The translations under genes and the position numbers were made by a program. This document shows positions 16,954 through 40,965 of a stretch of DNA of 41,901 nt, piece by piece (the first letter of the stretch is position 1; every line of letters begins with the position of its first letter). A model generated the notes under the pieces. The model was not told where the DNA came from, made no database searches, and worked only from the letters and a program-made list of their open reading frames with translations. This DNA comes from Malacoraja senta (lineage: Eukaryota), in assembly GCA_038087875.1 (NCBI GenBank), contig JAXLNO010001219.1:62001-103901 (forward strand). Reading direction: 5' to 3'.

Positions 16954-19100
16954 ATTAGTGGAAAGTCTATTCTTGTGCCGAACAAAATGGTTGAGTTGCA
17001 GCTTGCAAAGCCCGGGGTGTGAAACTGCAAATACATTGTGTTGCTTTCTTCAGTCTGACTTGTGACTGTAACCCCGCCCATGAAAGAACTGTGAAGGATG
17101 TTGTTTGAATATAAGAAATGGTGACCTGCAAAAACGGAGTAACCACCATAAAGTTCCGAAAGAGTCAAGGATTGCTTTGGGTAAAATGTCCCACTTATAA
17201 AGATAAATATTATCCACACAGTAAGCAGGGAGACGAGGAAATGAGACCAGAGGCTGCTTTGAACTCATAAACCCCCATGTTAGGGATATCCGAGGAGTGC
17301 TGAATAGCCAGAGATACTTGCAGATTCTGTGGTCACATTGATGCTGCCTGGCCCCTTTCAACTCGAGCTTGTTGATGGTCTAATGGGAGGAATGAACTTG
17401 AATTGGATCTTACCCCACTGCTAGACATCCCAAAGTGCCTCATAGATAGTGAGAGGTAAACAGTCTGAGATGCGACAGATAGACACAAAATACTGGAACA
17501 ACTCAGCGGGATAGGCAGCATCACAGCAGGGAAAGAACGGGTGACATTTCGGGTCGATGCCACTATTGTGTTTAGTGATGGGTACTGGCTTGCAATGTAC
17601 TTTAATCTAATATGTTCAAACAGTCATTTATTTCTTTACACTGATTTGTTCTGCAGTGCTGACACTTTGCTCGCGCTGCTGAAAAAAAGGGTGTGTAGAT
17701 TCGTAACTCTGAACAGCATCTTGCGAGCAGCTCGCTGTAAAACTGTTTGCTGAGAAGTGTTTGCAGTAGTCATGGGTCAAAGGCGAATGTAGACAGAATT
17801 CAATTGTTCTGCTGCATCGTCCGTTCCTCTCTGCAGTGTTTTTAGGTGGGCAAGTATGCAGGAAATAGCTCCTAACAAAAGATCCTTTACTGAGGGTCGC
17901 CAACGCTCAGCTAACACCAGTGGCGGACTCATCAGTGTGTTACACCCATAGTACGTGATACACAACATTGCCACAGATGTACACAACCAGAATAAACGAC
18001 ACTGTTCCACTAAAAGTGACACACCAGAACGATAGACGGCAGCAGATATTAGGTTATATTATAATGCAACTAGTTGCCTACAGAATGAATTCGTTGCAAG
18101 CAGATGTACAAAATCAGCCAATGGAATGTACACGAACACAACCCTGATAATGTATTCGCTCTGCATTGTAAAGAAGACAAGTTAATAATTCAATTCGCCG
18201 TGCATATTCTACCTTGCTTTAACTTCACTAAGTGTATCACTTCGCCCTTGTTGAGTTACATTACACATGTCAGTTACATTCCACATCCCGCTTTCCCAGC
18301 TGATCTCCATCCTGTGGTAATTCTAGACAAACTTCTTCACAGTCCTCCAGACCGTTAATTTTCTATTTTCAAAATGTGAATACCATGACAATAGTGTTTC
18401 AAATTTGAATTGAAGAGTTGAAGCAGAGAGGAGAGGGTCAAACTCCAATTAACCTCAGCTGATTTCAGATGAAAATCCCCTACTTCCTAACGCCAGCTTC
18501 CTGTTTTGCCCCTTGTCAACAGTAATAAGCAAAAACAAAAGTTCCAATTATTATATTTTTGATCTGCCGGTCCACTTACAAAATCATCAAGAGGGAATGA
18601 TCGGGAAGTGTACACATCTTAGGCGTTTCTACAATTCTAAATCGTCATATTTTATCCAACGTATCATTGTTTACATGAAGGGGCCCGACCCGAAACGTCA
18701 CCTAACCATTTTCTCCAGAGGTGCTGCCTGGCCCGCAGAGTTCCTTATGAATTTTTTTGTCTATCATTATTTCCACCACTTTTCAGTGTTAACAGACTCT
18801 GAGTACAGAGATAATCGCCGCTGCATCCTAACGGATACATCACACTTGACGAAGTGGTTGAAGCAGCTGCAATAACAACATGTAACGAGCACTTGGACAG
18901 TTCCACGTATGGGGAAGGTTTGGGGAGTTTCGTGTTGAACGTGGGAAAATCTGACTAACTTAGATGAGCACATTGGTCTAACGCGTTGGGGAGAAGGGCC
19001 TGTTTCCGTGACGTATGACTGTGATCATCCGACCCAACCATTTGTTAAATATAACCCTGATCCTTTCACACTGTAACGTGTCGAGCTGCTGCTGGCTCGC

Positions 19101-19227: not shown

Positions 19228-19264
19228 ATGTGGATTCCCATTCTTCTCATCTCCTCGCTGCCGG
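19228..19264 (+). CDS. Gene B leader exon (MWIPILLISSLP-G)
   Basis: aaaacaATG (A at -3), hydrophobic peptide, phase-1 donor G|gtgagt. Splices to V0 to give the signal peptide MWIPILLISSLPGAVWA. Confidence 0.87.
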
Positions 19265-22200
19265 GTGAGTGAAAGCCAGATCCTGATATTCCAATGATCA
19301 ATGTTATTTGGCGTCCCATGCACCCTTTTCACAGCAGAGATAGTTAAGTATGTGTAGACATGTAATGGGGGAGGTGCAACTCAGTGCATTGTGGTGATGG
19401 ATCTGAAATCACATTTGAATATCTAGACTATGTTCGTAGTTTAATCACTGTTGGCACTTGGTCTAATAGCATCCTGATGATAGTTTATAGGCATAAAATA
19501 GCAAATGAATTTGGAGCAGATACTCCAAGATACCTGGACCGGACATAGGTTGCAGCATCACCAGGAAGTTAATTCTACACTTTTGAAATGTGTTTACAAC
19601 TTAGGGGGGAGTCGGGATTGTGGACTCATTGTGTCAGTTCAAATATTCCCTGCATTTGTCCAACTCAACTCTGTCGCAAACCCAACAATCCCCCGGAGTC
19701 TGAGACTGAACCACTGTCCTCGCCCTATCCACCTACCCCCAACTCTCTCTCCATCCTCTTTCCAATCCGCAACCAAGTCGCGCTGAAATGCAAGTTCAGT
19801 TTATTGTCACGTGTACCGAGGTACAGTGAAAAGCTTTTTCTTGCGTGCTAACCAGCCAGATACATGATTATAATCGATCCTCTTACAGTGCATAGATACA
19901 TGAAAGGGAAATAAAGTTTAGTGTAAGGTAAAGCCAGCGAAGTCCGATCAAGGGTAGTCCGAGGGTCTCCAAAGAGGTAGATAGTTCAGCACTGCTCTCT
20001 GGTTGTGGTAGGATGATTCCGATGTCTGAGTACAACTGCGAAGGAACTGTCCCCGAATCTGGCGGTGTGCGTTTTCACGCTAATAACGCTCTCCGATAAT
20101 GTACCCGCTTTATTGTAGTTCGTCCGTCCTCTGTGTCCTCAGTCAGGGCTTTGTAAAGGCAGTGAATGTCTAAACACGGGTCCGCCTTTCCGCGGCCGGG
20201 TGGGACTACAGGGGTACCAGGCGCTGTTCGCGGGCACCTGGGGGATTTCCGGGACATCTGGGCACCGCCTGGGGTTGAATACATCCTTGACAAGTATTGT
20301 AACATAGTTGTATAGTTGTTTATTTCGTTTATTTGTTTCTCTTGTATTATGGTGGTGGGTTCTGTTTTGTTTTATTGTATCGTAAGTATTATTTTCAATA
20401 ATTAAATTAATTATTTGATAATATTTTTAAAAAAACACGGGTCCGGCCCAGTGTCGGTTGAGAGATGAATGTTGGCAGCGCAGCCGGCGGCACCGCCAAT
20501 TAAATAGCAAAGTGGGTGCTATTTAATTAAATAGCCTGTGATTGTTGGAAGGCAGCTCCTGCAACACTGCCGCGCTCCCTCAGAACCGCACTGCGATCCC
20601 AGCCCAGTTTCTGCTCAGGGATCTGGAGTGGGAAGTGAACCCAAATTGTACTGACCCGCGGACAGAACATTGACACAACTGGTACAATAACAGCACTGTC
20701 TGCACTTCAGACCGGAGACATTGGTCGTGAAGCAATATGACACATTATGGAACGTTTTACGTTTTCTTTCATGTAATCTTCAAAATGTATCAATTCTGGG
20801 TAAATATTTTTAGTATAATATCTAAAGTGACCAGCACACAAGTGGACCCGGATCCAAAATTTATAATACTCGGAACATCAGAATTAAATCAAACATTTAC
20901 AACAACACAAAGAAACTTTATTGATTATAGTATAATAACAGGAAAAAATTTAATTCTAAAATTTTGGAAAGGCCCTACGGCCCCCACAATCAAAATGTGG
21001 ATTATAGAAATGACGGTGACCTTAAACGTGGAAAGAATCAGATTTTCCCTGTTGGACAAACAGGAATTATTCGTTGGAACATGGTCTCCCTTTATTGATT
21101 ATTTAAAGGGTCAGAATGGTTCAGCACGGGAACCTGACTAATGCTCGGGCTAAAGAATGGATGAAATGTTATACTCTGAAATGTACGAATATATCTCGAA
21201 TTAAGTTTTTTATTTTAATAATTTTTTCCATTCTTCTTTAACTATCTTTCTCTTTTTTTTTTGTTTTTTGTTTTGTTTTTTGTTTTTTTTGTTTGTTTTT
21301 TTCTCTTTTTCTTCTCTCTCTTTTCTTTCTTTACTTCATCTATCTTTTTAGTTCTATCTAGTTAAAAAAAAAAAAAAAAAAGACAAAAGGTATTGGAGAC
21401 AATGTAATAATAATGGATAATATTATCAATTCAAAAATGTAAGCCTGTAATGATGTTAATAGGTTATGTACTTATCTCCAATAAAAAATATTTTCCAAAA
21501 AAAACAAAATGTATCAATTACCATTAAACAGTTAATTTGCTCTCCATCTGAAAGTTTCTCCGCTCAGTTTCAGGTGCAGTGTGGGCAAAGTGGGAAGTAA
21601 AAGGAGTTGTGGGAAGAGAGATCACAATCGATTGTCACTATGCAGCAGAGTACCGCTCACACACAAAATACTGGTGCCGTGGGAGGAGTCGATCGTGTAG
21701 AGTTTTAGTGGAAACAAATGGGCAACACGGACGGAGTGGAAGAGTGTCAATCACAGATAACCCGGCTCGAGGAATATTTACTGTGACTGTGGAGGATCTT
21801 CACTCTGAAGATACAGGATGGTACAGCTGTGGAATTTCAACATCAGCCGACCATCCAATATTTAACGTTTTACTCGAAGTATCTGACGGTATGTTTCGCA
21901 GCGAATGACTTGACGTCTCCAGCAGAAAGACAATACAGGATTACAATCGATCCTCTTACAGTGCATAGATACATGAAAAGGAAATTACGTTTAGTGTAAG
22001 GCGAATCCAGCAAAGTCCGATCAAGGGTAGTCCGAGGGTCATCAAAGAGATAGATAGTTCCGCACTACTCTCTGGATGTGGTAGGATGATTCAGATGCCT
22101 GACAACAGCTGTGAAGAAATTGTCCCCGAATCTGGCGGTGTGCGTGTTCACGCTAGTAACGCTCTCCGGTAAGGGACCTGGAGGTGGGTGGTGAGTGGGC

Positions 22201-25200
22201 GAGTGGTGAGTGGGTGAGTGGTTGGGTGAGTGGGCAGATGCATGGCAGATGAAGTTTAATGTGGATAAATGTGAGTTTATCCACTTTAGTAGCAAAATCA
22301 GGAAGGCAGATTATTATCTGAATGTTGTCAGGTTGGGAGAAGGGGAAGTACAAAGAGATCTGGGGGTCCTTGTTCATCACTCACTGAAAGTAAGCATGCA
22401 GGTACAGCAGGCAGTGAAGAAAGCTAGTGGCATGTTGACCTTAATAACAAGAGGAGTTGAGTACAGGAGCAAAGAAGTCCTTCTGCAGTTGTACATGGCC
22501 CCAGTGAGACCACACCTGGATTATTGTTTGCAGTTTTGATCTCCAAATTTGAGGAAGGACCTTCTTGCTATCGAGGGAGTGCAGTGTATGTTGAGGGAGT
22601 GCAACAAGGTTAATTCCCGGGATGGCGGGACTGTCATCTGTTGATTGAATGGTGCGGCTGCGCTTGTATACTCAGGAATTTAGAAGGATGAGATGGGATG
22701 TTATTGAAAAATATAAGATTATTAAGGGATTGGACACGCGAGAGGCAGGAAACATTTTCCCGATATTAAGAATAATGGATAGGCCATTTAGAACGGAGAT
22801 GAGGAAAAACGTTTTCACCCAGAGAGTTGTGAATCTGTGGAATTATCTGCCTCAGAAGGCAGTGGAGGCCGATTCACTGGATGCATTGAAAAGAGAGTTA
22901 GATAGAGCGCTTTGGGCTTGCGGAATCAAGGGGTATGCGGAAAGGCAGGAACGGGGTACTGATTGTGGATGATCAGCCATGAACACATTGAATAGCGGTG
23001 CTGGCTCGAAGGGCTGAATGGCCTACACCTGCACCTATTGCCTATGTATCTATGTATCTCTTTATCTATGTCTGTATCTACAGTTCCTTGTGTCTCCACC
23101 TCTGATATTGAAAAGCAAGACCAATCAAATATTCAGCAAGAGAACACTATACCCGTTGGAGTAACTGGGCGCAGTGGTTTCCTGATGATTGTTATCGGGT
23201 GTTACATTTGTATTTGAAGTGAACCCTACTGATGTTAACGACTCACGAATAGATTTAGGTTCTGTTGATATAAGGAAATAAAGGACAATTAAAGATAGAC
23301 AAAAAAATGCTGGATTAACTCAGCGAGACAGGCAGCATCGCTGGAGAGAATGAATGGGTAACGTTTCGGGTCTGAGCATGGGTCTCGACCCGAAACGTCA
23401 GAGCGAGAGAGTTAGATGGAGCTCTAAAAGATAGCGGCGCCATGGGATATGGTGAGAAGGTATGAACGGGGTACTGATTGTGGATAATCAGCCATGGTCA
23501 TAGTGAATGTCGGTGCTGGCTCGAAGGGCCGAATGGCCTACTCCTACCACAGTTGTCTCTTATCTCTTGACCAGCTTTATTGTAACCCGTCTGTCCTCCG
23601 TTCTCAGTCAGGGCTATGTAAAAGCAGTGGCGGCGGTGAATGCCTAAACACGGGTCCGGCCCAGTGTCGGTTGAGAGATGAATGTTGGCAGCGTAGCCGG
23701 CGGCACCGCCAATGAAATAGCAAAGTGAGGTCTTTCTGCAGGGTGAGAGGCCGGGCACCGCCTGAGATTGTTGAAAGGCAGCTCCTGCAACACTGCCGCG
23801 CTCCCTCAGTACCGCACTGCGATCCCAGCCCAGTTTCTGCTCAGGGATCTGGAGTAGGAAGTGAACCCTAATTGTACTGACCAGGGGACAGAACACTGAC
23901 ACAACAGGTACAATAACAGCACTGCCTGCACTTCATACCGGAGACATTGGCCGTGAAGCAATATGACACATCATGGAACGATTTAAGTTTTCTTGCATGT
24001 TTTCTTCAAAATGTATCTATTTCCATTAAACAGTTCATTTGTTCTCCATCTGAAAGTTTCTCCCCTCCAATTCAGCTGCAGTGTGGGGAGAGACGTATGT
24101 AACAGGAGTTGTGGGAAGAGCGATCACAATCTATTGTCACTATGAAGCAGAGTACCGCTCACACACAAAATACTGGTGCCGTGTGCAGAATCGGCAATGT
24201 ACAGATATGATGGAAACAAATGGGCAACACGGACGGAGTGGAAGAGTGTCAATCACAAATAACCCGGCACGAGGAATATTTACTTTGACTGTGGAGGATC
24301 TTCACTCTGGAGATACAGGATGGTACAGGTGTGGAATTACAACATCTAACGGCCGTTCAATGTTAAACGTAGAACTCCAAGTATCTGACGGTACGTTTCT
24401 CAGCGATTGACTTGTCGTCTGCACTGAAAGGCCTGATCTATGTTTTCTCCGGGAAGGGTCAGGGCAGCACCGATATCCCGAGGCTCCGCAGCAGTGCAGA
24501 GACCTGCGGGGAGCGGGCGGGGGTCGGGAAACCGCACTCATTTTGCTCTCACCCTGAGCGGGCTCTGCCCCACTGAGCGGCCACCCACTTAGAAACATAG
24601 AAACATAGAAAATAGGTGCAGGAGGAGGCCATTCGGCCTTTCGAGCCAGCACCGCCATTTGTTGCTATCATGGCTGATCGTCCCCAATCAATGACCTGTG
24701 CCAGCCTTCTCCCCATATCCCTTGATTCCACTAGACCCTGGAGCTCTATCTGACTCTCTCTTAAATCCATCCAGTGATTTGGCCTCCACTGTCCTCTGTG
24801 GCAGGGAATGCCACAAATTCACAACTCTCTGGGTGAAAACGTTTTTTCTCACCTCAGTCTTAAATGGCCTCCCCTTTATTCTAAGTGTGGCCCCTGGTTC
24901 TGGACTCGCCCAACATTGGGAACATTTTTCCTGCATCTAGCTTGTCCAGTCCTTTTATAATGTTATGTGTTTCTATAAGACCCCCCTCAAACTTCTAAAC
25001 TCCAGTGAATACAAGCCTAGTCTTTTCAATCTTTCCTCATAAGACAGTCCCGCCATCCCAGGGATCAATCTCGTGAACCTATGCTGCACTGCCTCAATCA
25101 CAAGGATGTCCTTCCACAAATTAGGAGACCAAAACTGTACGCAATACTCCAGATGTGGTCTTTCCAGAGCCCTATACAACTGCAGAAGAACCTCTGTACT

Positions 25201-28200
25201 CCTATACTGAAATTCTCTTGTTATGAAGGCCAACATTCCATTAGCTTTCTTCACTGCCTGCTGTACCTGCAAGCCAACTTTCAGTGACCGGTGTACAAGG
25301 ACACCTAGGTCTCGCTGCGCCTCCCCCTTACCTAACCTAACCCCGTTTTGATAATAATCTGCCCCCTTGTTTTTGCCACCAAAGTGGATAACCTCACATT
25401 TATCTATATTATACTGCCACGCATCTGCCCACTCACTCAACCTGGTCACCCTGCAACCTGCTAACATCCTCTTCATAGTTCACACTGCCATCCAGCTTTG
25501 TGTCATCCGCAAACTTGCTAGTGTTGCTCCTAATTCCCTCTTCCAAATCATTAATATAAATGGTAAACAGTTGCGGCCCCAACACCGAGCCTAGCGGCAC
25601 TCCATTCGCCACTGCCTGCCATTCTGAAAAGGACCCGTTCACTCCTACTCTTTACTTCCTGTCTGCCAACCAATCTTCTATCCACGTCAACACCCTACCC
25701 CCAATACCATGCGCTCTAATTGTAGTCACCAGTCTCCCGGGCGGGTACTTATCAAAGGCTTTCTGAAAGTCTAGATACACTACATCCACTGGCTCCCCTT
25801 CATCCATTTTACTTGTCACATCCTCAAAAAAATCCAGAAGATTACATAGATACATAGAAAATAGGTGCAGGAGTAGGCCATTCGGCCCTCCGAGCCTGCA
25901 CCGCCATTCAATATGATCATGGCTGATCATCCAACTCAGTATCCCGTACCTGCCTTCTCTCCATACCCCCTGATCCCTTTAGCCACAAGGGCCACATCTA
26001 ACTCCCTCTTAAATATAGCCAATGAACTGGCCTCAACTACCCTCTGTGGCAGAGAGTTCCAGAGATTCACCACTCTCTGTGTGAAAAAGTTTTTCCTCAT
26101 CTCGGTCTTAAAGGATTTCCCCCTTATCCTTAAGCTGTGACCCCTTGTCCTGGACTTCCCCAACATCGGGAACAATCTTCCTGCATCTAGCCTGTCCAAC
26201 CCCATAAGAATTTTGTACGTTTCTATAAGATCCCCTCTCAATCTCCTAAATTCTAGCGAGTATAAGCCAAGTCTATCCAGTCTTTCTTCATATGAAAGTC
26301 CTGACATCCCAGGAATCAGTCTGGTGAACCTTCTCTGCACTCCGTCTATGGCTATAATGTCCTTCCACTTGAAGTGTGTCGAGCATGATTTTCCTTTCAT
26401 AAATCCATGCTGACTTGGACTAATCCTTTTACTGCTATCCAAATGCCCCATTATTACCTCTTTAATAATTGACACCAGCATCTTTCCCACCACCGAAGTC
26501 AGGCTAACTGGTCTGTAATTCCCCGTTTTCTCTCTCGCTCCTTTTTTGAAAAGTGGAATTTAACTTCTCTTTCACTTCACTTTTCACTTCAAGTGGAATG
26601 CTCAGCACATTTCCCTTCCTCTGAACTGTATGAAATGTCACCCTGTCAGAAGTTTGCATTCCGACTCAAAATAATAATCCGACTGATCAGTGAGAACAAG
26701 TGTTGCTCGCGGACTGAATACCCCGAGAGTTTTTAAAAAATCAGTCCCCAGAGCTCAATAGAGTGCGTTCAGTCCTCCCGGGGTAGGCCATCCCTCTTCC
26801 CGCCCCCATCTCAGGGACCAGTCATTCCCTCCCAAACCCCGCGCTCTCTCTCTCTCCCTCTGCCCCGTCAATGCGCCCCCATCCCCAGCAGCCACTGTCC
26901 ACCCACCGCCCGGCAGTCAGCCAACCTCTCCACCCGGACATTTCCCCGATGTTAAGCAGAATAAACTCATCTTTCACCACATCAGCCGTCGCACACAACA
27001 CATAATCATCCAACATTATCGCCACCTGCAACGGGATCCCACTACTAGACATATATTTCCATCTCCACCGCTTTCTGCTTTCCGAAGAGACCGTTCCTTC
27101 CGTAACTCCCTGGTCAACGTCCACCCTCCCCCCCCCCCAAAAAAAAACATCCCCTCCCCAAGTACCTTCCCCGACAACTGCAGGAGATAGATCACCTGTC
27201 TCGATACCTCCTTCCTCTATTCCGTCCAAGGTCTCCAACAATCTTTTCGGGTGAGGATTGACTTGCATCTCCTCCAAGCTCACCTACTACATCCGCTGTT
27301 GCAGGTGTGAACTACTATATATCGGCTAGACCAAGCGCAGACTCGTCGATCGTTTCGCTGACTAACTCCGCTCAGTCTGCTCCTGGACCTCCTCCACTAT
27401 CCAACGTAAATAGGAGGAAAAGCACCTGGGCAACTTACAACCCATCGTTTGAATCTTGACTTCTCTAACTTCAAGGAACCCTTGCTTTACTCCTGTCCCC
27501 ATCCCGCCACCATCCTAGCTCTCCAGTTAGTTGCACAGTCAAACTGATTTTCTTTTACTTATTGTATGCCTCGTTGTCACCTTCCCTTCAGCTCACAATG
27601 ATCCATTGTCCATTTTATTTTCACCTTTGATCAGTTGTTTTCACACCTTACCTGTCCATTTATCTTCTGTCTCCCTGTCCCATGATTCTCAGGCTGAAGG
27701 TGGGTCTCGACCCGAAACGTCACCCATTCCTTCTTTCGAGAGATGCTGCCTGCTCCGTTGCGTTACTCCAGCATTTTGTGTCTATCTTAAAGGGATCGTA
27801 ATTCGTTTTCCACAGCAGAGATGGTTAAGTGTGTGTAGACATGTAATGGGGGAAATGGAACTCGGTGCATTGTGGTGATGGATCTGAAATCACACTTGAA
27901 TATCTACACAATGTTCGTAGTTTAACCACTGTTGACACATGGTCGAATTGCATCATGATGATAAATGAAAGGCTTAAAATAGCGAATGAATTTGAAGCAG
28001 ATACTGCAAGACACCTGGACCGAAGGTTCCAACGTCATCAGTAAGTTAATTCTACACTTTTAAAATGTGTTTACCAAGGAGGTGGAAGTCAGGATTGTGG
28101 ACTCATTGTGTCAGTTCAAACATTCCCAGCATTTGTCCGGCTCAACTCTGTCGCAAACCCAACAATTCCCCGGTGTCTGAGACTGAACCACTGTCCTCGC

Positions 28201-31200
28201 TCTATCCACCCACCCCAACTCTTTCTCCATCATCTCTCCAATCCGCGGCCCAGTCGTGCTGAATTGTCCAGGGCGAGCCGGGGTCATGGGGAATAAAACC
28301 TGTCCCAGATGAGCAGCGGGACATTGGGCTCACAATTCAGTTTAGTTTATTGTCACGAGTACCGAGGTACAGTGAATCTGGCGGAGTGTGTTTTCACGCT
28401 AGTAGCGTTCTCCAGCAAGGGACCCGCTTTATTGTAACCCGTCCGTACTCTGTACTCAGTCAGGGCGTTGTAAACACAGTGGCTGCGGTGAATTTCTAAA
28501 CACGGGTCCGGCCCAGTGTCGGTTGAGAGATGAATGCTGGCAGCGCCGACACTGAAATAGCAAAGTGAGGTATTTCTGTAGGGTGAGAGGCCGGGCACCG
28601 CCTGGGATTGTTGAAAGGCAGCTCCTGCAACACTGCCGCGCTCCCTCAGTACCGCACTGCGATCCCAGCCCAGTTTCTGCGCAGGGATCTGGAGTGGGAA
28701 GTGAACCCTAATTGTACTGACCCGGGGACAGAACACTGACACAACTGGTACAATAACAGCACTGCCTGCACTTCAGACCGGAGACATTGGCCGTGAAGCA
28801 AAATGACACATCATGGAACGATTATGTTTTTCATGTAATCTTCAAAATGTATATATTTCCATTAAACAGTTCATTTGCTCTCCATCTGAAAGTTTTTCCC
28901 CTCCCTTTCAGCTGCAGTGTGGGGAGAGAGGAATTTAACAGGAGTTGTGGGAAGAGCCATCACAATCGATTGTCACTATGCAGCAGAGTTCCGCTCACAG
29001 GCTAAATACTGGTGCCGTGGGCAGAGTCGCCAATGTACAGATATGGTGGAAACAAATGGGCAACACGGACGGAGTGGAAGAGTGTCAATCACCGATATAC
29101 CGGCACTAAGAATATTTACTATGACTGTGGAAGATCTTCACTCTGGAGATACAGGATGGTACAGCTGTGGAATCACAGCACCTGCCGACCATTCAATGTT
29201 TAACGTATATCTCCAAGTATCTGACGGTACGTTTCGCAGCGATTGACTTAATGTCTCCACTGAAAAGCCTGATCCATGTTTTCTCCGGGAAGGGTCAGGG
29301 CAGCACCGATATCTCGAGGCTCCGCAGCAGTGCAGAGGCCTGCGGGGAGCGGGCGAGGGTCGGGAAACCCCACTCATGTTTGCTCTCACCCAGTGCGGGC
29401 TCTGTCCCATTGAGCGGCCACCCACTTCAAGACACTCAACACATTACCCTGCCTCTGAATTGTATGAAATATCACCCTGTCAGAGGTTTGCATTCCGACA
29501 AACTAATAACCCGACAGATCAGTGAGAAACAAGTGTTGCTCGCCGTCTGAATACCCGGAGAATCATAAACAGGGAATCAGTCCCCAGAGCTCCACAGACT
29601 GCGTTCAGTCCCCAGGTACCTTCCCCTACAACTGCAGGAGATGCAACACCAGTCACTATATATCCCCCCTTTACTCCATCCATGGGCCTCAACAGTCTTT
29701 TCGGGTGAGGCAGACGTTCACTTGCATCTCCTCTAACCTCATCTACTCTATCCGCTGTTCCAGGTGTGAACAAGCGGATATAGTAGATGGGAGACCAAGC
29801 GCAGACTCGGCGATCGTTTCGCTGAACAACTCCGCTCAGTCTGCCTCGGCCTACGCTACATCCCGATTGCTAAACACTTTTATTCCCCCTCCCATTCCCA
29901 AACTGAACTTTCCGTCCTGGACCTCCTCCAGTGCCAGAGTGAGGCCAAAGGCAAATTGGAAAATCAGCGCCTCATATTTCGCTTGGGCAGCTTACAACCC
30001 AGCGGTTTGAATATTGACATCTCTAACTTCAAGTAACCCTTGCTTTACTCCTTTCCATCCCGCCCCCATCCGAAACCTCCAATTAGATTCACCTGATAAT
30101 ATTTTACTGATTGTATGCCTCGTTGTCACCTTCCCTTCAGCTGACAATGATTCATTCTACATTTCCCTTTAACATTGTCACCTTTGATCACTTGTTTTAA
30201 CATCTTACCCTTCCATTTCTCTTCTGTCACCCAGAACATGACTGTCAGGCTGGAGAAGGGTCTCGATCCGAAACTTCACCCACTCCTTCTCTCGAGAGAT
30301 GCTGCCTGCTCCGCTGAGTTCCCCCAGTATTTTGTGTCTCTCTTAAAGCGATCGTAATTAGTTTTCGCGATTAAATTACAAGGCATTGAATTGTGTTTTT
30401 GGCACGCTGGTCTTCATCAGTGAGAACATTCAGAATATAATTTGAGATAATATGCTTCAGACGTGCAGATGTTCAGTCCACACTTTGGGAATTGTGTTCA
30501 GCTTCAGTCACTCAACTCCAAGAAAAGTTGAGATGGACAGCGTGCAGAAAGGTTTAAGGGCGACGTTGCCTGGACAGGATGGGATTGACGCAGGGAGCGA
30601 TTGGACAAACTCAGACTTCATTCCTTAGTGTGGAAATGATTGAGAGAGGAACTTATAGAAATGTATCAATCACGAGAAGCATGTTCATTTTCCCACGATG
30701 TGTGGAATCAAAAAGTGGAGGACAGAGGTAATGGGAACTATTTAAAGAGGGAGGAATAGTAAGGTGCAATTGACCATAATGTCATGTTTTGTACAGATGA
30801 GTGGCCGAAGCTGAACACAATTCGCACAAGTTCGACCTCAACAACATATGTACAACTGAAACATAACATCCCAACATATGTTCTGAGGAACAACATTTTC
30901 CACACATTGGGTAATATGTACATGGAACCTGCTGCCAGGGGAAGTTGTTGAGGCAGTTAGAATAGCAGCATTTAAAATAAATTTTGGATATTTGCGTAGA
31001 TTGGGATCATTGCGAGTGATAAATGAGAAACGCGGACATATGGAAATGTCATAGAAAGACATGTTGGTCGGCATTAATGAGCTGTTGTGATGGGCATCTT
31101 TCGTTTCTCTATAACTCTAACCTTCTTCGGTTTCTGCGCTTCGCACACTCCCAGAGATGTAGATGAGCCGGTGAGGTATCAACCGGACGGTTCGGGCTGA

Positions 31201-34200
31201 GATAAAGTGCTGCTGAGATTTAGCAAGTGTTTGGTTTTTAACAATTCATACAGGTGACTGAATATTTGCTCCATTCCCACAGAACCCATTTCTGCTCCTG
31301 TGCTCAGTTATCTGTCAGCAGCAAATGCCTCACGTCTTGGAGGCTCAGTGTCAGTGTCCTGTGAGTCTCTCCGTGGATCCCTTCCCATCCATTACACGTG
31401 GTTTGAGAAGAAGGAGCATCGGGTGTCAACGATCTTGAAAGGCAATCAACTGGATCTGAGTTGTGACATCCTCAGAGGTGAACACCTTCGATATTACTGC
31501 ACAGCCGCAAATAATCGTGGGACAAAACCCAGTGAAATAGTCAAGGTGAAAGTCTTCAAAGGAGCAGGAACGTGCAGTTATGTGACAGAAATGAACAATG
31601 CAGGTGAGTGTTCCTCTCGTGTCCCTGAACCTGCTGCTATTCACCTTGTGGTGATGTTCATGGATTTCTTGTTATTTGCAGACGGCATCATTGCAGCCAC
31701 CGTGAGCTCATGCTGTAAAATGCGAGAGTTTGTTTGGGGGACTGGCAAATAATTGCCCGTAGCTTCCACCATGGAGGTGTTGCGCTAATTCAGCAAAGGA
31801 GAGAAAGACATGCACTTGTCACAAAGGGTTGAGTGCACTCCATCAAATTTCTGCCTTCTGCCTTAAAAAATGCCGCTTGGCTGCCGCTTAAGGTCTCACA
31901 GTCACTTTGAGACATTGAAAGCAACCAAATGCATCCTGTTTGGATCCGCCATCATTTACAATCAAGGATGTGAGACCAAGCGGAGGCTTGGCGATCGTTT
32001 CGCCGAACACCTCCGGTCGGTCCGCAATAACCAACCTGAACTCCCGGTGGCTCAGCACTTCAACTCCCCCTCCCATTCCGTATCTGACCTCTCTGCCCTG
32101 GGTCTCCTCCATGGCCACAGCGAGCAACGCCGTAAATTGGAGGAAATGCACCTCATATTCCGCTTGGGCAGTCTACATCCTGGTGGCCTGAACGTTGAAT
32201 TCTCCCAATTCTGCTAGCCCTGGCTGTCCCCTCCCCTTCATCAGCCATCTGGTTGTCTCCTCCCCTCCCCCAGCCCTCGGGCTCCTCCTCCGCCTTTTCC
32301 TTTTTTCCTTTCTTCTCCCCACCCCCTATCAGTCTGAAGAAGGGTTTCGGCCCGAAACGTTACCTATTTCCTTCGCTCCATAGATGCTGCTGCACCCGCT
32401 GAGTTTCTCCAGCATTTTTGTGTACCTATGTACAATTTCATGATCATGTTCATGATTTTAACTGTTAATTTGTGTTAAACTCCAGTAATATCACTAAATT
32501 AAATTGTAATCTACTTGGCCGTCACTCCATCAAGTATAACCCTTACTTTTGTCAAAGAGAATTTTGAAATGAACTCCCAGTAGTCGTGGAGACGTTCAGA
32601 TTGGAAGTCCAGAATAGAGTGTGAATGGTTTACATCAGACAGACCAAGCTTATACAATGCCAGCGTTTCTTAAACTATTTCAGTGCCATTCACCCTTGAG
32701 TCTTTATTACAAGATTTAATTCACCCTCCACTAAATATTCTTATGTTTTTTTGGTTATTATCATCTTATTTTCACGTGTGCATAATTTTATATATAATTT
32801 ATTTTGTCACATGAGCAAAAAACATGAATTAACTCATTCACCCCAAAATAATTTCATTCGCCCTTGGGTAAACCATTCATCAGTTTAAGAAGCACTGGCC
32901 GAGGCTACAATTTCGCCGAACACTTGTGTTTGGTCTGTCATGACCCAGAGTCGTACTTGATAGACACCCCGTTGATGCAGAGCAGCAGCAGTTTGCACCA
33001 TCTGCACGATGCACTGCAGCAACTCACCAAGACTCCCAAGACATTACCTTCCAATTGCAACAGGCTCCGTGTTCAATGCATCATTAGTCACCATTCACAC
33101 CCACATTGGCTGGGAAGCGCTTTGGAACGATGTGCAGATGGTGAGGGACGGTGTACAGTATCTGTCTCTCATCGCAATCTAGGTGGAATTCAACAGAGTT
33201 AAGAAAATCATTGGGCGGACTCCCCTGTATATATTGATGTATACTATAATGTATATGTTTGTGAAAGACTAATTTTGCTCTTCAATCTATGAAAGAATTT
33301 CCTTCAGTTTCAGGTGCACTGTGGGCAGAGAGCGAAGTACGAGGGGTTGTGGGAAGAGCGATCTCAATCGATTGTCACTATGCAGCAGTGTACCGCTCAC
33401 ACACAAAATGCTGGTGCCCTGGGACAAGTCGCCAATGTACACATATAGTGGAAACAAATGGGAAACATGGACAGAGCGGAAGAGTGTCAATCACAGATAA
33501 CCCGGCACGAGGAATATTTACTGTGACTGTGGAGGATCTTCACTCTGGAGTTACAGGATGGTACAGATGTGGAATTATTACACCTGGCGAACCAACATTT
33601 AAAGTACATCTCCAAGTATCTGAAGGTAGGTTTCTCAGTGAGTGACTTCATGTCTCGACTTTGGCATCTGCATAAAACATTTGTTGGGTCACATATGGGA
33701 GCCTGGTGCACAGTTCTGGTCGCCGCTTTATAAAACAAAAGATGTGAAAGGTTTGGAGAGGTTACAGAAAAATGTCACCGGGATATTTAGTTGTAGTTTA
33801 CAAATGCAACATGGAAACGGATCCTTCGGCCCACCGAGTCCACACCGACTAGCGATCACCGGTCACACTAGTTCTATGTTATTCCACTTTCCCATTCGCT
33901 CCCTACACACAATTCTACAATACCGCCATTCACACACCTCATTAGTGCAACATTATCACTATCAACAATTGTATACAAGGAAATTTAAAAGTTGTTGATA
34001 ATGATACTGTTGCACTAATGAAGTGTTTGAATGTTGGTATTGTAGAATTGTGGCAGAGTTTCAGATTAAAAGAAGATTAACTGCAGATGCTGGAAATATA
34101 AAACAAAGACAGATGGTGCTGCTGTGTATTGGTGCAGTGGCAGACATGGTAGTTCTGCCAGCTGGGTGGATGGAGAGACACAGAGATGTTCAAATCTGTT

Positions 34201-37200
34201 AAATTGTGAGGAGAAGGTACAGGGAAGACTTACAAGGATGTTGCGAGGGATTGAGCAGATTAGGACTTTATTTCTTGGAGCACAAGAGGATGAGGGATGA
34301 TCTTATGGCAGGTAAAAAATAATGCGAGGAATAGATCGAGTTAATACACAGCCTTTTGCTCAGAGTAGGGGAATCGAGAACCGGAGGACATGGTTTTAAT
34401 ATGAGGGGGGAATGATTTAACAGGAACCTGGGGAGTAACGTTTTTACACAATGGTTGGTAGGCACATGAAACGAACTGCCGACAGAAGTAGTTATGGCAG
34501 GTACTATCGTAACATTTAATAAAATATTGGACATGTACATGAATATGATATGTTTAGTGGGTTAAGGGCCAAGAAAGGGCAGGTGGAACTAGTGTAGATT
34601 GGGCGTGTTGGTCAGCGAGGGCAAGTTAGACCGAAGGGCCGGTTTCTATGCTGTATGACTCTATGATTCTATGTAGATGGATGGGTCAGATTACAAAATG
34701 GCGGCTCTGGCTAAGATACATGGTGGATATTGGCGAGTGTTTGATTTTCAGATGTTCACTCAGTTGTCTGACTGTTTGCTCCTTTCCCACAGACCCCGTG
34801 TCTGTTCCTGTGCTTGGCTTTCTGTCACCAGCCAATGTCTCCTGTCTCGGGGGCTCAGTGACAGTGTCCTGTGAGTCGGTCAGTGGATCCCTTCCCATTA
34901 GCTACACATGGTATGAAAAGACCCCATCTGTGGATTCAAAGATCTCAGACCAAAATGCCCTGGATCTGCATTGTCAATCATTCAAACACCAGCACCATCA
35001 ATATTATTGCACAGCCTCCAATAATAATGGAACAAAATCCAGTGAAATGGTCAATGTGTCCATCTCCAGCAGTGACGTGCCCTGCAGTTTTCTAGTGAAA
35101 ATCAACGGCACTGGTAAGTAGTGGGGGGAATGAGGAGAAGAAGGGGAAGTGCGGGTGGGGGTTTCATCAGATTACAAGTGATAGAAGCAGAAATAGACCA
35201 TTCAATCATGGCTGATCTATCTTCCCCATTCTCCTGCTTTCTCCTCATAACGTCCGTCACCCTGAAATCCCTGCACGTTATTTAATTAATTTATCAAGAT
35301 TAATATATGGAATTATGGCTCATTTGTCAGTACTTGGTTGTTGGGCTCCAGAAATAGAATTCCTAGTGCTGGTGTAGGCTAACATCCTGTATAGAATTGT
35401 CTCTTCCATTTACACAGCTTTAAACTAGGTTTGCAGTGACATCAGTCCATGCACATTCACTTTCCCACCACATGATCCACACACAGATATGGTAAGGGAT
35501 CAGACATTATCAGTAAATGTGGCCACAGTTAAATCCTTGACGACGGTATCCCATTTACCAGCACCTCGTCCATTGCAGCAATTCAGGTACCTCCACCTTC
35601 TGGGTTTAAAAATATGTCTTGATACCCTTGAAACATCCTGCTCCTTAACTTAACCATGTGTTCTCCACATTTACACATATCTGTCGTGCAACATTTCCCA
35701 AAAATCCACTGTCTATGCAGCTCAGAGTTTTTGCACACCTGTAATTGGTTTCCCCTTCCTCACCTGGGGGAGGCGGACAGGAGCACTTGGAGAAAACCCA
35801 CACGGTCACAGGGAGGTGGTAAAAATTCCGTACATCCGTAGTCAGGATCGAACCCGGGTCTCTGGCGTTGTAAGGCAGCAACTCTACCGCTGCGCTACTG
35901 TGCCGTCGACACCTGGCGCCAGAGTTGTTACCAGCCCGCCTGCTTGTCGTAACATCTCCCATTTACTCAACTCACACTGAAGAAACATTATCCTGTCTGT
36001 TAAGCCTATCAACTACTTACATCGGAAAACCATACTCCTTTGTTCAACTGCAAGTGAAAAGCAGTGAAACTGACTTTTATTTCCTTGTTCCAACAGGTCA
36101 TGAATATTCTTGTGAAAATTCGATAACATCCAATTACTCTGCAAGGTAAACCACTTTATTTCCAATGGAAGTTACAATATAGTAATTGCTGGTGTTTTGG
36201 TTGGGAATGCTTTATTTGGGAGAAATTTGTGCCTGCCTTTCACTGGCATTAAATGCCCTGAGAGTATTGATCTGAATGCACAGTGGCACAGCCGATAGAA
36301 TCACAGCCTCATAACACCACGACCCTGGTTCATTAGGTGCTGTCTGTGCGTGGTCTGCATGTTTTGCCTTTTATTGTGTTGGTTTCATTTAAGTGCTCCA
36401 GTTTCCTCCCAGCTCCCAAAGATGTGCCAGTTGTAAATTGCCCCGTGTGTACAGGACAGCGGTTGAATCTGTGGATAGGGGATGGGGCGGGGAGGGAGGG
36501 AGGGTGTTGGACGGTAGTGCTAGTTGATGAGGAAGTGGGGAAAATAAAAATGGGATTGACAGAGGATCCGTGTGAATGTAGTTGACTGTCGGCACAGACC
36601 AGAAGGGCCAAATGGCCTGTTTCAATACTGTGTTTCTCCATGGGTCTTTGATCCAATGAAACCAAATATCGAAGCATAATCAAATTTTGTACGTCCAGCC
36701 ATGATCACATTGAATGGCGGTGCTGGCTCAAAGGGCCGAATGGCCTACCCCTGCACCTCTTGTCTATTGTCTATTGTCTATTGTTTCAAGCCTGACACCA
36801 AATATAAATGTATCTCTTAAATATTCGTTAATAATATGTATATAACTTGCAAACCAATTATTAGTTAACTCTTCAGAAGGGGAATTACACTGGGTTTACA
36901 TCTCATTGTGTTGTGTACATGCTTGGATGATAAGAACAAGTTCTTCCATTTGCTGCTTTTCAGAGAGCGCTTCCTGCAGTATTCACCATGACTTCTCCTT
37001 CACTAACCTCATCCCATGCTGTGAGATGAATATAGTTGCCAAACCCAAGTCTTGCAGTTTAGCTTGGTTGACACTTGCTCTGGTGTGGTGCTGATAGGTA
37101 AATGCATTATGAATTATGGGCTAAGACACCCCCCCTTGATATCACTTATGGCAACACCTTGCCATTGATGGGGTCACGCACCAACAATTCGCTGGCGCAG

Positions 37201-39198
37201 AATGTGAGAAAAGTCTTGAATCAGACCGAATACAGCGAACTGAGTTAACTCAATCAATCAATCAATCAATCAACCGTTATTGTCATTTTAAACATTTCAC
37301 ACATAAATAAAAACAATAAAAACACTCCAAAATAATAATAATCAATAAATAAATATATAAATAAAACAATCCAGTCCCTGATAAAAACAATACGAATAGC
37401 TAAAAAGTGCAGGTAAAAAAACAGCAACATTAAAATACAAGTAAAAACATTCATAAATAACTGACGCTCCCTTACACATTGAACCTTGAAAACATTGTTT
37501 TTTTAAATTATCCCTGAATATTCCATCATAATACAGTCATGAAAGTGGGAACACTTTGTTATTTATCTTGTTACAATTGAAATAGGTCTGGCTTTCTATC
37601 ACACTCTTGCGATAGGAAATAAGAATATTAATAAAACGCACGCCGCTATTAGCGAACCTTTAACCGATTTTTCGAACACACACCATCCACACACCTACCG
37701 CGTTAATCCAAGTAATATCGAGGGGGCGAGATTAAGCATTAACATTTTTAATTTATTTTATTACTTGGCCTCATCCGTTTCCATATTTATTGTCCCACCT
37801 CCCTTCCACCATTAGAATTGATCCCTTTTAATTAATCTATCCATATGGATTTTATTATAATCTTCCTTGCAGCTGCATTTTCTTTCTTCCAGGGTATTAC
37901 ACTGTTCTTTGTATCTTTCACACATCCACAGTGTTCCCTTTCCCGTGACTCCCAGTCTGAAGAAGGGTCTCGACCCGAAACGTCACACATGGGGTCATGC
38001 AGCAAAGATTCGGTGGCGCAGAAAGTGAGAAACCAGCCTTGAATTCAACCGAATACACCGAACTGTCTTAACTGACGCTCCCTTACACATTGAACCTTGA
38101 AACCTCTCCCGCTGTGTTTCGCCAGCATTGTGTGTCACTGAATTCACTGCTCCATCTGCTGACTTATTTCTCTGTCTTCTCCGAATCCATTTAACCGTCT
38201 AATCTCTGATACCCAGTATTGTAGATATGCTCCAGCAAAGAGGTCAGTAATTGGTGATCATAGGTTGTCCCCCCCCCCCCCAGTCCAACACCCGTTCTTT
38301 CTCCAAGATGATCTCCATTGGCTCTGCTGCTTCGCCCCGCTCCACTTCACTAAGATTATGAAGCAAATAACAGGTAAATGTTTCAAAGATAAATCGTCAC
38401 GTTTCCTCCCATTGATTCTGTATCTCTTGCCCTTTGCCCAGTTACATCTCATGGAATGTGGGGCGCTGGTTGTTCTTTCTCCTGCTTGTGCTCTGGAGTA
38501 TCTCAACCGCGGTGTTCACAAGAGGCTGTAAGGTAGGTTTTATTATCATCATGTTCATAAATTATAGGAGCAGAATTGGTCCATTCAGCCCATTATATAT
38601 AATCCGCCCCCAATCACGACTATTCTAGCCTTCGCTCCCGATCCATCCTCCTGCCTTCACCCTATAACCCTTGACATCCTTATTTATGAGGAATATGAAA
38701 ATCTCCGGCTTAAAAATATCAATTGATTTGGATAGGTACAAAAATACTGGAGTAACTCAGCGGGACAGGCAGTATCTCCGGAGTGGATTGATATGGCCTC
38801 CACAGCCTCCTATGGTAATGAAATCCATTGATTCACCACCCTCTGCCCAAAACAATCCATTCTCTTCGCCGAATGTATCCAAACGGTTTCCATTAATGCT
38901 TTCAAATATCCTGTCCATTGATATAAACAAAAGTCGTGCACGTTTTCATAACCTGAAGTTAAACCAAATCACTATGTAGATGATATCATGTGGTTTTGTC
39001 AGGTTGTACGTGTGCTGGGTGGATTTCTGTGCGCGGTGTGGATTCGTTGGGGTCCATCTTCCAGACAGCCATGTGTTGGGGGTGGTCGGGTCAAATAAAG
39101 CGTGGTTCCCACTGTCAGTGAGTCTGATGACTTCACATTGTCTTTTGCAGAGACGCGATGAATCAGAACCTCGCCACTGGACACACGAATTAGAATGA
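19228..39198 (+). CDS. Gene B (complete model, 707 aa): SP-V-V-V-C2-V-C2-linker-TM(Arg)-short tail; join(19228..19264,21574..21888,24076..24390,28912..29226,31283..31603,33314..33625,34793..35113,36097..36145,38442..38532,39151..39198)
   Basis: Ten exons with GT-AG boundaries and compatible phases sum to 2124 nt (708 codons), with no internal stop. Confidence 0.82.
19790..20090 (-). repeat. Interspersed repeat, probably a LINE 3' end (family uncertain)
   Basis: Shared with 21930-22170; internally deleted copies at about 4000-4080 and 28335-28415. Confidence 0.55.
20185..20432 (+). mobile_element. Tx1-clade LINE 3' end with 13-bp TSD
   Basis: Flanked by AAACACGGGTCCG (20172-20184 and 20433-20445); encodes GDFRDIWAPPGVEYILDKYCNIVV*; AT-rich 3'UTR and A-tail. 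Confidence 0.8.
20796..21504 (+). mobile_element. 5'-truncated L1 LINE with 15-bp TSD
   Basis: Flanked by CAAAATGTATCAATT (20781-20795 and 21505-21519); ORF2 end ILKFWKGPTAPTIKMW..WSPFIDYLKG; T-rich 3'UTR, AATAAA at 21480, A-tail. Confidence 0.88.
21574..21888 (+). CDS. Gene B Ig V-type exon (V0, N-terminal)
   Basis: Acceptor tttcag|GT, donor G|gtatgt, 315 nt, four-Cys CD300/pIgR-type V domain. Confidence 0.93.
22230..23090 (+). mobile_element. CR1 LINE, 5'-truncated, sense to gene B
   Basis: WADAWQMKFNVDKCE..RPHLDYCLQF and FRTEMRKNVFTQRVVNLWN; (TATGTATC)n tail. Confidence 0.92.
24076..24390 (+). CDS. Gene B Ig V-type exon (V1)
   Basis: Acceptor ttcag|CT, donor G|gtacgt; paralogue of 322-636 with 11 amino-acid differences. 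Confidence 0.93.
24592..26530 (-). mobile_element. CR1 LINE (orthologous to 838-2250) with a nested insert
   Basis: Same insertion site after the V1 exon; same RT motifs. Confidence 0.92.
25844..26365 (-). mobile_element. Younger CR1 3' fragment nested in the CR1, copy B only
   Basis: Starts with an ACATAGATACATAG tail; encodes GMSGLSYEERLDRLGLYSLE..GTGY*; absent from copy A at about 2090. Confidence 0.87.
26740..27785 (+). mobile_element. Penelope-like remnant (paralogue of 2470-3452)
   Basis: Same RT/GIY-YIG fragments. Confidence 0.78.
28912..29226 (+). CDS. Gene B Ig V-type exon (V2)
   Basis: Same splice sites and translation as 4579-4893. Confidence 0.93.
31283..31603 (+). CDS. Gene B Ig C2-type exon (C2a)
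   Basis: Same splice sites and translation as 6950-7270. Confidence 0.9.
31958..32428 (+). mobile_element. Penelope-like GIY-YIG 3' fragment (copy of 7625-8095)
   Basis: Identical ORF 31870-32217. Confidence 0.86.
33314..33625 (+). CDS. Gene B Ig V-type exon (V3)
   Basis: Same splice sites and translation as 8980-9291. Confidence 0.9.
34793..35113 (+). CDS. Gene B Ig C2-type exon (C2b)
   Basis: Same splice sites and translation as 10459-10779. Confidence 0.92.
36097..36145 (+). CDS. Gene B Cys linker micro-exon
   Basis: Copy of 11763-11811 with the same AG/GT sites. Confidence 0.75.
38442..38532 (+). CDS. Gene B transmembrane exon
   Basis: Copy of 14107-14197. Confidence 0.8.
39151..39198 (+). 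CDS. Gene B terminal cytoplasmic exon (RRDESEPRHWTHELE*)
   Basis: Copy of 14816-14863 with one TCG>TGG (Ser>Trp) change. Confidence 0.68.
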   Translation, partial: RRDESEPRHWTHELE

Positions 39199-39973
39199 AG
39201 ACTCCTAGCTTGCACCAACAGTGAGGGAATTCTGCACCGCGATGAAATATTTATGCATCATCCTGCTTTGTCAACTGATACCAATTGGACGAATATATGT
39301 ATCTTGCAATTCAACGAACGGTTTCATGAAAGTGACTTCAAAGCAATGTTCCAAACTTTCCAAACCATATCTGTTTCCAAAACTCATTTACCGCACTGGT
39401 CTTAATGTTTGTCACCTCTTCCAAGGTTTCTTTCATCACCTTCGAACTATTGTTTTAACCTCTGCGTGGTTTCTGCTGCTCAAAAGTCTTATACCCTGTT
39501 AAAATATATTATATGCATTCAACGTCCTGGAAAAAAATGTTTTCGCTGACAAATGAATAATTATGCATCAGGATGCTTCTTAATAAATTTTTGTTGTCAA
39601 TAAATGGTTTGTCTAATTTGTTTTGTTTAGACTGTAAATTTAGTGTTGAAGAACAGACTGAAATCAGATTGCTGGAGATTTCTCCTGTTGCCAAACGTTA
39701 AAGGCGTTAAGGAATGGCAATGATTAATCTTTCAGACCATGCTATCCCATCAGAACAAAACTCCAGATGCTGGTTTAAACTGAAGATAGACATAAATTGC
39801 TGGGGTAACTCAGAGTGACAGGCGGCATCTGTGGATATATGAGGTAAGTTTAGGCGGACTCAGCGGCGGTATTCAACGAATTGATCGCCGATCCTGCGCT
39901 TGTTCTCGCTTCTCGGCGATCGCTTCGCTGAACAGCTCCGCTCAGTCGGCCTAAACCTACCTGACATCCCGGT

Positions 39974-40313
39974 CAATAGACAATAGACAATAGACAATAG
40001 GTGCAGGAGTAGGCCATTTGGCCCTTCGAGCCAGCACCTCCATTCAATGTGATCATGGCTGATCATCCCCAATCAGTACCCCGTTCCAGCCTTCTCCCTA
40101 TATCCCCTGACTCCGCAATTTTTAAAAGCCCTATCTATCTCTCTCTTGAAAGCATCCAGAGAACCTGCCTCCACCGCCCTCTGAGGCATAGAATTCCACA
40201 GACTCACCACTCTCTGTGAGAAAAAGTGTTTCCTCGTCTCCGTTCTAAATGGCTTACTCCTTATTCTTAAACTATCGCTCCTGGTTCTGAACTCCCCGAA
40301 TATCGGGAACACG
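39974..40313 (-). mobile_element. CR1 3' fragment nested in Penelope (copy of 15639-15978)
   Basis: Identical ORF 40073-40312. Confidence 0.85.
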
Positions 40314-40965
40314 TTTCGCTAAACAGTTTAACTCCCCCTCCCATTCCCACACTGACATTTCTATCCTGGGCATCCTCCATTGTCAGAGTGAGTCCCAGCG
40401 CAAATAGGAGGAACAGCACCTGATATTTCGCTAGGGCAGCTTACACCCCAGCGGTGTGAACATTGACTTCTCTAACTTCAAGTAACCCTTGCTTTCCCTC
40501 TCAATCCAGCCCCCCAATTACCAGCTCTCCGATCAGTCTGACAGTCTCCGACTACATTTTACCTCTCATTGCTTTGTTGTTATCTTCTCCCAGCTAACAA
40601 TGATCTATTCTACATTTTCCTTGAGCTTCACCCCCTTTGTCCCGTTTTCACACCTTACAATTCCTAATCTAATTATCTCCACCTCCCTTGACTTCAGTCT
40701 GAATAAGGGTCTCGATCCGAAACGTCACCCATTCCTTTCATCCATAGATGCTACCTGTCCCAATGAGATACTCCAGCATGTTGTACAACAATATTTTTTT
40801 GATTAAATGATTGAAAGAAACAGCATGGATACTGACCATTTGGCCCACTGAGTCCACGTCAACCAGCAATCAACCCTTTCACAGTAATGTTGATAAACAT
40901 TTTATTGCTGCAACGAGTTATTCATTTTGTCCACCGTACAAAAGAGTTAATGGACTATAAATAAT

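Follow-up and report, generated by a model that had tools for sequence, protein, structure and literature searches.

The DNA analysed here, hereafter the window, is a stretch of 41,901 nucleotides from the skate Malacoraja senta (GenBank assembly GCA_038087875.1, contig JAXLNO010001219.1, positions 62,001 to 103,901 of the forward strand). On its + strand, between positions 19228 and 39198, it carries a gene whose ten GT-AG exons join to an unbroken coding sequence of 2124 nt, i.e. 707 amino acids (aa) plus stop. The predicted product is a type I membrane protein consisting of a leader, six immunoglobulin (Ig) domains in the order V-V-V-C2-V-C2, a cysteine-containing stalk, a transmembrane segment (TM) and a 20-aa tail, and it very probably represents a short-tail member, of the MDIR5 type, of the MDIR (modular domain immune-type receptor) family of skates. 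The exon chain had been proposed in a preliminary description of this DNA and was reproduced in full, with canonical AG/GT borders:

19228-19264, + strand: leader exon, MWIPILLISSLP plus one base; the sole leader in the window
21574-21888, + strand: V1 exon, pIgR-D1/CD300-type V-set by sequence (Pfam V-set, E 2e-14)
24076-24390, + strand: V2 exon, V-set (Pfam); exon duplicate of V3
28912-29226, + strand: V3 exon, counterpart of the first V in MDIR5
31283-31603, + strand: C2a exon, FCRL5-like C2 (FCRL5, E 4.5e-38)
33314-33625, + strand: V4 exon, of the 'internal V' subfamily, with KCWC for KYWC (pIgR, E 4e-38)
34793-35113, + strand: C2b exon, FCRL5-like C2 with five cysteines (top single FCRL5 domain, 36.8 bits)
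36097-36145, + strand: stalk exon, GHEYSCENSITSNYSA; 49 nt, phase 1 to 2, with the conserved cysteine of EYSCE
38442-38532, + strand: TM exon, SYISWNVGRWLFFLLLVLWSISTAVFTRGCK, with an arginine at the outer edge of the hydrophobic core
39151-39198, + strand: tail exon, RRDESEPRHWTHELE plus stop; no tyrosine

All Ig exons (6/6) are of phase 1-1, and therefore any subset of them stays in frame. The relationship of V2 to V3 extends to their flanks, which are 90.6% identical over ~1 kb. Alternative acceptors 6 nt upstream of V1 (at 21568) and of V4 (at 33308) would each add Val-Ser, and this longer form (LPVSGA...) is the one present in MDIR5 and most relatives, the leaders of which start with MWIPILL or MDKTMWIPILL. 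Searches across the window for a second leader exon and for tail exons with immunoreceptor tyrosine-based inhibitory motifs (ITIMs) found neither.

What kinds of Ig domain these exons encode was addressed by profile, sequence and fold comparisons. Pfam recognizes a V-set domain in each of the V exons (4/4; E 4e-10 to 2e-14) and, near threshold, Ig_C17orf99/Ig_3/Ig_2 in both C2 exons. Among PDB sequences, pIgR is the top match of V1 (E 1e-60) as well as of V4 (E 4e-38), followed by CD300/CMRF35 molecules, NKp44, TIM, TREM2 and FCMR; E-values of the V domains against CD300 are 1e-15 to 1e-20, and the top single-domain alignment of V1 is that with pIgR D1 (57 bits, including the RHT.KYWCR stretch). 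By sequence, the V domains are thus of the pIgR-D1/CD300/NKp44/TREM type. FCRL5 (9loc) is matched by C2b at E 1e-42 and by C2a at E 4.5e-38, with six FCRL5 domains matching at 17-37 bits each and sharing the pattern PVSxPVL / CE..GSLPI.Y / YYCTA.N; the next matches, titin (no domain above 16 bits), CD22 d6-d7 and FCRL4 (both E >1e-3), are far weaker. On these alignments the C2 domains have FCRL5 as their closest solved relative, and the strength of the V1–pIgR and C2b–FCRL5 matches argues that the domain pattern is not due to chance. The AlphaFold2 model of C2b is an all-beta Ig sandwich (predicted local distance difference test 90.5), for which fold searches against Swiss-Prot models and the PDB yielded generic C2/I-set and FN3 matches (E ~5e-3 to 4e-2), including VSIG10L2, FCRL5, HEPACAM2, PECAM1, ESAM and CD22 at E ~1e-2. 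These searches do not separate FCRL from PECAM, CD22 or ESAM, and the label 'FCRL-type' therefore rests on sequence rather than on fold. The domain types assigned in the preliminary description hold, with two corrections to the motifs on which it had relied: KYWC is not common to all four V domains, since V4 has KCWC, and PVS does not begin both C2 domains, since C2a starts with P-I-S. The KCWC of V4 (window 33400-33420, and likewise in the second gene copy described below) differs from KYWC in all relatives and places an extra unpaired cysteine beside the second disulfide.

The family to which the gene belongs emerged from homologue searches. Among 1.8 billion representatives, 47 proteins matched C2b below 1e-30, and the close matches that were looked up all came from cartilaginous fish and all combined V-set with C2 domains. 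Follow-up searches brought up three proteins of the clearnose skate Rostroraja eglanteria named 'Modular domain immune-type receptor', i.e. MDIR3 (P0167), MDIR5 (P0187) and MDIR2 (P0260), and our comparison with MDIRs covers these three; neither MDIR1 nor MDIR4 was among the hits. When the predicted protein was compared by BLAST with all proteins fetched, its nearest matches were skate proteins: residues 6-501 of MDIR5, with stalk, TM and tail among them, are colinear with its residues 213-707 and 77% identical to them; MDIR3 aligns to residues 107-679 (73%), and a 'pIgR-like' protein of Amblyraja radiata (P0168) to residues 113-679 (78%). MDIR5 itself reads V-C2-V-C2 followed by GHEYSCENPITSSYSASYISWKVGRWLLFLLLVIWSISTAVFTRGSKKRDESEPRHSAHELQ, its stalk, TM and tail being nearly the same string as in the window gene.

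Maximum-likelihood trees built per domain, an analysis that the preliminary description had recommended, gave V4, C2a and C2b positional counterparts in MDIR3 and MDIR5. V4 clusters with the third domain of MDIR5 and the fourth of MDIR3 (support 96/97), C2a with the second and third (100/100) and C2b with the fourth and fifth (93/87), respectively, and V3 clusters (98/90) with the second V of the protein from Amblyraja, V1-V3 all being placed in an N-terminal V group. Because the matches to MDIR5 and MDIR3 are colinear and the domains cluster position by position, we are strongly confident that the window gene is an MDIR family member of the short-tail MDIR5 type. MDIRs have been described as a multigene family of activating and inhibitory receptors of skates and likened to CD300, TREM, FCAR and pIgR (PMC3031540).

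How widespread such a combination of domains is was assessed with hidden Markov models made from the window's own V and C2 exons, by which all fetched proteins were typed. Both domain types occurred together in 143 of them, every one chondrichthyan, with carriers among skates, stingrays, mantas, sawfish, an electric ray, many sharks and the chimaera Callorhinchus, and with RefSeq names such as 'polymeric immunoglobulin receptor-like', 'Fc receptor-like protein 5' or 'uncharacterized'. Patterns of the (V-C)n kind are common, V-C-TM, V-C-V-C-TM and V-C-V-C-V-C-TM being dominant; V-V-C-V-C-TM was found in five proteins and V-V-V-C-TM in one, the Hemitrygon RefSeq model P0219. With this interleaving present in named MDIRs and in RefSeq models throughout Chondrichthyes, the 'hybrid' design is neither new nor specific to skates, and what is unusual about the window gene is its third N-terminal V only. 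A case of a different kind is the RefSeq model P0004 of Rhinoraja longicauda (XP_078277019.1), named 'TRIM69-like', in which RING/B-box/PRY domains are joined to MDIR C2a-V-C2b-TM-tail exons; neighbouring genes have probably been fused here by read-through or by chimeric annotation.

The window gene (gene B) is the downstream member of a tandem duplication with a period of ~24.3 kb. Positions 3098-17566 equal 27433-41901 at 99.65% identity (~14.5 kb), the homology reaching the exact end of the window, and 1-3090 is ~95% identical to 23755-27381. The upstream copy A comprises the following exons:

322-14863, + strand: upstream copy A, its 5' end cut by the window start
322-636, + strand: V2'
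4579-4893, + strand: V3'
6950-7270, + strand: C2a'
8980-9291, + strand: V4'
10459-10779, + strand: C2b'
11763-11811, + strand: stalk'
14107-14197, + strand: TM'
14816-14863, + strand: tail'

Between the copies, the exons from V3 to TM are identical and the tail has one mismatch; V2 has 16 mismatches, 11 of them non-synonymous. Such a pattern agrees with recent gene conversion, or possibly with a tandem placement of haplotypes. ORF fragments resembling the reverse transcriptase of long interspersed nuclear elements (22210-22972 on the + strand, 24973-26493 and 40073-40312 on the - strand), in which ...FTQRVVNLWNSLPQ... tails recur, take up the introns that separate V1, V2 and V3 as well as the region 3' of the gene. 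In the intron after C2b (35730-35900 and, in copy A, 11398-11559) lies a very high-copy repeat, with a contig depth in the 1e5 range in every run; no tRNA gene was detected by ARAGORN, including at this repeat.

A further question is which of the Ig exons are actually joined in the mature message. In records from another skate, V-C2 joining is seen in MDIR3 and MDIR5. Sequencing-run searches returned no RNA run of Malacoraja senta, only small RNA runs of related species along with DNA-like runs. A first round of placing the related-species RNA contigs was dominated by repeats and gave no exon-exon joint. RNA contigs of a related species, ~92% identical to the window, cover C2b, ending at its exon borders, and two contigs (X1 record 7 and X2 record 14) pass without interruption across the predicted TM-tail splice, connecting 38530 with 39149. 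Of the junctions that the preliminary description had proposed to check against RNA, this one is thus supported; no junction upstream of the TM exon, including leader-V1-V2-V3, was confirmed in these contigs.

The genomic sequence itself carries traces of how the N-terminal part may have arisen. A stretch upstream of V3 (27806-28263) is 87% identical to intron 1 (19326-19787), with an equivalent in copy A at 3473-3930, and looks like the relic of an internal leader that was lost on fusion of units. This intron-1-like sequence suggests an MDIR5-like unit in which V3 had formerly been the first V and to which V1 and V2 were added by duplication. The idea of a separate gene starting at V3 was considered and rejected, because a repeat ending ...GGTCTCGACCCGAAACGTCACC takes the place that its leader would have upstream. 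Given the modularity of the exons, the number of N-terminal V domains could vary through duplication as well as through exon skipping. Ratios of non-synonymous to synonymous substitution rates among the N-terminal V exons are ~0.6-1.8.

These data have to be weighed against several other ways of reading the locus. The preliminary description had seen in it a lineage-specific receptor, amounting to a new class of hybrid receptor, and the domain types are indeed kept apart in mammals, as it had stated, the pIgR and CD300 matches being V-only and the FCRL5 match C2-only; the exact order V-V-V-C2-V-C2 also recurs in no other fetched protein. However, the cDNA-derived MDIR2, MDIR3 and MDIR5 already combine V and C2 domains of the same subfamilies in the same order, and the architecture runs throughout Chondrichthyes in RefSeq. 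What stands is therefore the restriction to cartilaginous fish (143/143), not the new class: as the preliminary description had itself allowed, the design largely proved to be that of known MDIRs (V-C2-V-C2 in MDIR5, V-V-C2-V-C2 in MDIR3), the extra V alone being unmatched. Save for this extra V, the MDIR matches rule out a new hybrid class, which we consider extremely improbable. An artefact of assembly is a different matter, as two haplotypes placed in tandem could have made the junction or the exon content of gene B chimeric. The mere 0.35% difference over the long repeat, the identical exons from V3 to TM and the end of the homology exactly at the window end would agree with this, but the adjoining 3 kb at ~95% identity and the 16 differences in V2 are too divergent for alleles lying beside 99.65%, the overall pattern resembles gene conversion in a genuine tandem array, the MDIR family is known to be large and multigenic, and gene B has the exon order of MDIR3 and MDIR5; a partial artefact is thus unlikely. 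Far closer to the preferred reading is a real gene in which V1 and V2, as cassette exons or exons of recent duplication, would often be skipped, and which would mostly yield MDIR5-like (V-C2-V-C2) or MDIR3-like (V-V-C2-V-C2) ectodomains on the same TM and tail. Phase 1-1 throughout would permit this, and V3 is still preceded by the intron-1-like sequence. Moreover, the RefSeq model P0232 of Rhinoraja longicauda (V-V-C2-TM) leaves out an intact exon of the V4 type, flanked by good splice sites, at 15858-16166 of locus L001, inside LOC144605586, so that presence of an exon is no proof of its inclusion, and the Leucoraja isoforms X1 (803 aa) and X2 (593 aa) differ by one V-C2 pair. On the other side, V1, V2 and V3 each retain an open frame, the canonical Cys/Trp/DxGxYxC framework, a polypyrimidine tract and AG/GT sites, the only leader in the window stands upstream of V1, and three consecutive N-terminal V domains do occur in the Hemitrygon model (V-V-V-C-TM). 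The six-domain form as the main product is put in doubt by the P0232 model, by the lack of a V-V-V-C-V-C-TM protein among all others fetched, and by RNA restricted to related species and confirming no junction upstream of the TM exon; the substitution ratios in the V exons, which fit diversifying selection but also relaxed constraint, count against the preferred reading as well. Frequent skipping of V1 and V2 is, in our judgement, only slightly less than an even bet, and co-splicing of all three N-terminal V exons would be a toss-up. We infer that the 707-aa V-V-V-C2-V-C2 protein is the maximal isoform, with about equal chances of being or not being the main one.

A similar balance has to be struck for what the MDIR5-type protein does in the membrane. 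A short-tail module, W.VGRW(L/V)(L/F)F.LL...FTR..K(R/K).(D/E)(E/Q)S.P, is kept in ~30 proteins of skates, stingrays, mantas and sawfish, and its VGRW string, amid neighbouring residues that vary, stays the same all the way from skates to sawfish and mantas. The window holds two tandem copies of the short-tail form, and ITIM-type relatives are known from other species, in which a different, uncharged TM is followed by tails with VVYADV, ITYAVV and SIYASV. Judged from these sequences, an Arg-bearing TM with a short tail next to uncharged ITIM forms would be the layout of paired activating and inhibitory receptors, and the window gene might, with somewhat less than even probability, encode an adaptor-coupled activating partner of ITIM-bearing MDIRs. 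In such a receptor the V domains, the variable positions of which lie in loop regions, would bind ligand, the arginine at the outer TM end would recruit an adaptor with an acidic TM and an immunoreceptor tyrosine-based activation motif (ITAM), and the conserved stalk cysteine (EYSCE) and the fifth cysteine of C2b may take part in an additional disulfide or in dimer formation. The alternative is an MDIR that does not signal, acting as decoy, ligand sink or co-receptor through its ectodomain, its stalk cysteine or its conserved acidic tail, with the arginine outside the membrane and no ITAM adaptor. Several points speak for this alternative and count against an activating role. MDIR5 is reportedly classed, in the original description of the family by Cannon et al. 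in 2006, among the members with neither typical activating nor typical inhibitory signalling motifs. The arginine precedes a hydrophobic core of 17 residues, after which a second arginine follows (FTRGCK), so that the TM can be read without a buried charge and the first arginine, at the very edge of the core, might be positioned beyond the bilayer. Conservation of the tail motif K[RK]xDESxP itself points to a possible function of the tail instead. Finally, the FcR gamma chain was not found in shark genomes (Akula et al. 2014, PMC4016189). A core of 17 residues is, however, short for a bilayer, so that the VGR residues probably enter the membrane, and invariance of VGRW amid varying neighbours is typical of adaptor-binding TM segments, as is the different, uncharged TM of the ITIM-bearing relatives for the classic layout of paired receptors. 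A non-signalling MDIR is therefore less probable than not by a clear measure, without being negligible. Taken as a whole, the locus is best explained, and we hold this with high confidence, as an MDIR5-type gene with a phase-1 modular ectodomain and a possible role as activating partner or co-receptor of ITIM-bearing MDIRs.

Should MDIR-type V-C2 receptors correspond, in cartilaginous fish, to the Ig-binding receptors pIgR/Fc-alpha-mu-R and FCRL, the short-tail member in the window could act as an Fc-like activating receptor, with IgM, IgW or IgNAR as its ligand. We regard this as improbable, and Ig binding in particular as pure speculation, the sole hint being the resemblance of the domain sequences to pIgR D1 and FCRL5. 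Were it true, pIgR-D1-type and FCRL5-type Ig-binding modules in one chain would predate the split of cartilaginous and bony fish, and this would contradict the published view that pIgR, FcRL and FcR-gamma first appeared in bony fish (PMC4016189). In the same 2014 survey, shark genomes were reported to contain no homologue of pIgR or FcRL (PMC4016189), a claim of absence on which MDIR domains of cartilaginous fish with pIgR D1 and FCRL5 as closest solved relatives have a bearing. Independently of ligand, there is a result for annotation, in that a gene of the kind to which automated annotation gives the names 'pIgR-like', 'FCRL5' or 'uncharacterized' is a member of the MDIR family, of which the mixed V/C2 design is a hallmark. 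To our knowledge MDIR signalling is still uncharacterized, and we know of no adaptor for MDIRs; the strong conservation of the Arg-TM and tail across batoids provides a concrete and testable handle on it. The locus also illustrates how a receptor can be lengthened by duplication of phase-1 exons and loss of an internal leader. For MDIRs in general, the abstract of Cannon et al. reportedly lists one to six ectodomains, four domain subfamilies from which they come, and a similarity to 'FcR homologs'.

Set beside known systems, the protein shares with the V domains of pIgR, CD300/CMRF35, NKp44, TREM and FCMR the V-set fold and the extra C-x6-C disulfide. Yet pIgR consists of V domains throughout and has a long sorting tail, whereas the window protein interleaves two C2 domains and ends in a tail of ~20 aa, and CD300/CMRF35 molecules carry a single V on a stalk and no C2, in contrast to six Ig domains here. 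With FCRL5 (PDB 9loc) it has in common the motif PVSxPVL...CE...GSLPI.Y...YYCTA.N; the FCRL family, however, is all-C2 with ITIM/ITAM-like tails, and the window protein has four V domains and a tail without tyrosine. Membership in pIgR, CD300/CMRF35 or FCRL is ruled out by this six-domain V/C2 mix together with the short Tyr-free tail. FcalphaRI, LILRA and PIR-A are adaptor-coupled activating members of paired receptor families, and the MDIR5-type protein resembles them in its short Tyr-free tail, in a basic residue near the outer TM end and in having ITIM-bearing sister genes with near-identical ectodomains, but differs in that the position of its arginine within the membrane is uncertain and an adaptor is only inferred. 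Closer still are MDIR3 and the RefSeq 'pIgR-like' proteins of Amblyraja, Leucoraja and Rhinoraja, in which V-V-C2-V-C2 aligns with V2-V3-C2a-V4-C2b at 73-78%, although they have an uncharged TM of their own and a tail of ~120 aa with ITIM-like tyrosines. The closest counterpart is MDIR5 of Rostroraja eglanteria: leader, V, C2a, V, C2b, the EYSCE stalk, the VGRW TM and the RRDESEP tail follow one another in the same order and the domains fall into the same subfamilies, whereas KYWC stands where V4 of the window gene has KCWC, and the window gene has two additional V exons, V1 and V2, between the leader and the equivalent of the first V of MDIR5.

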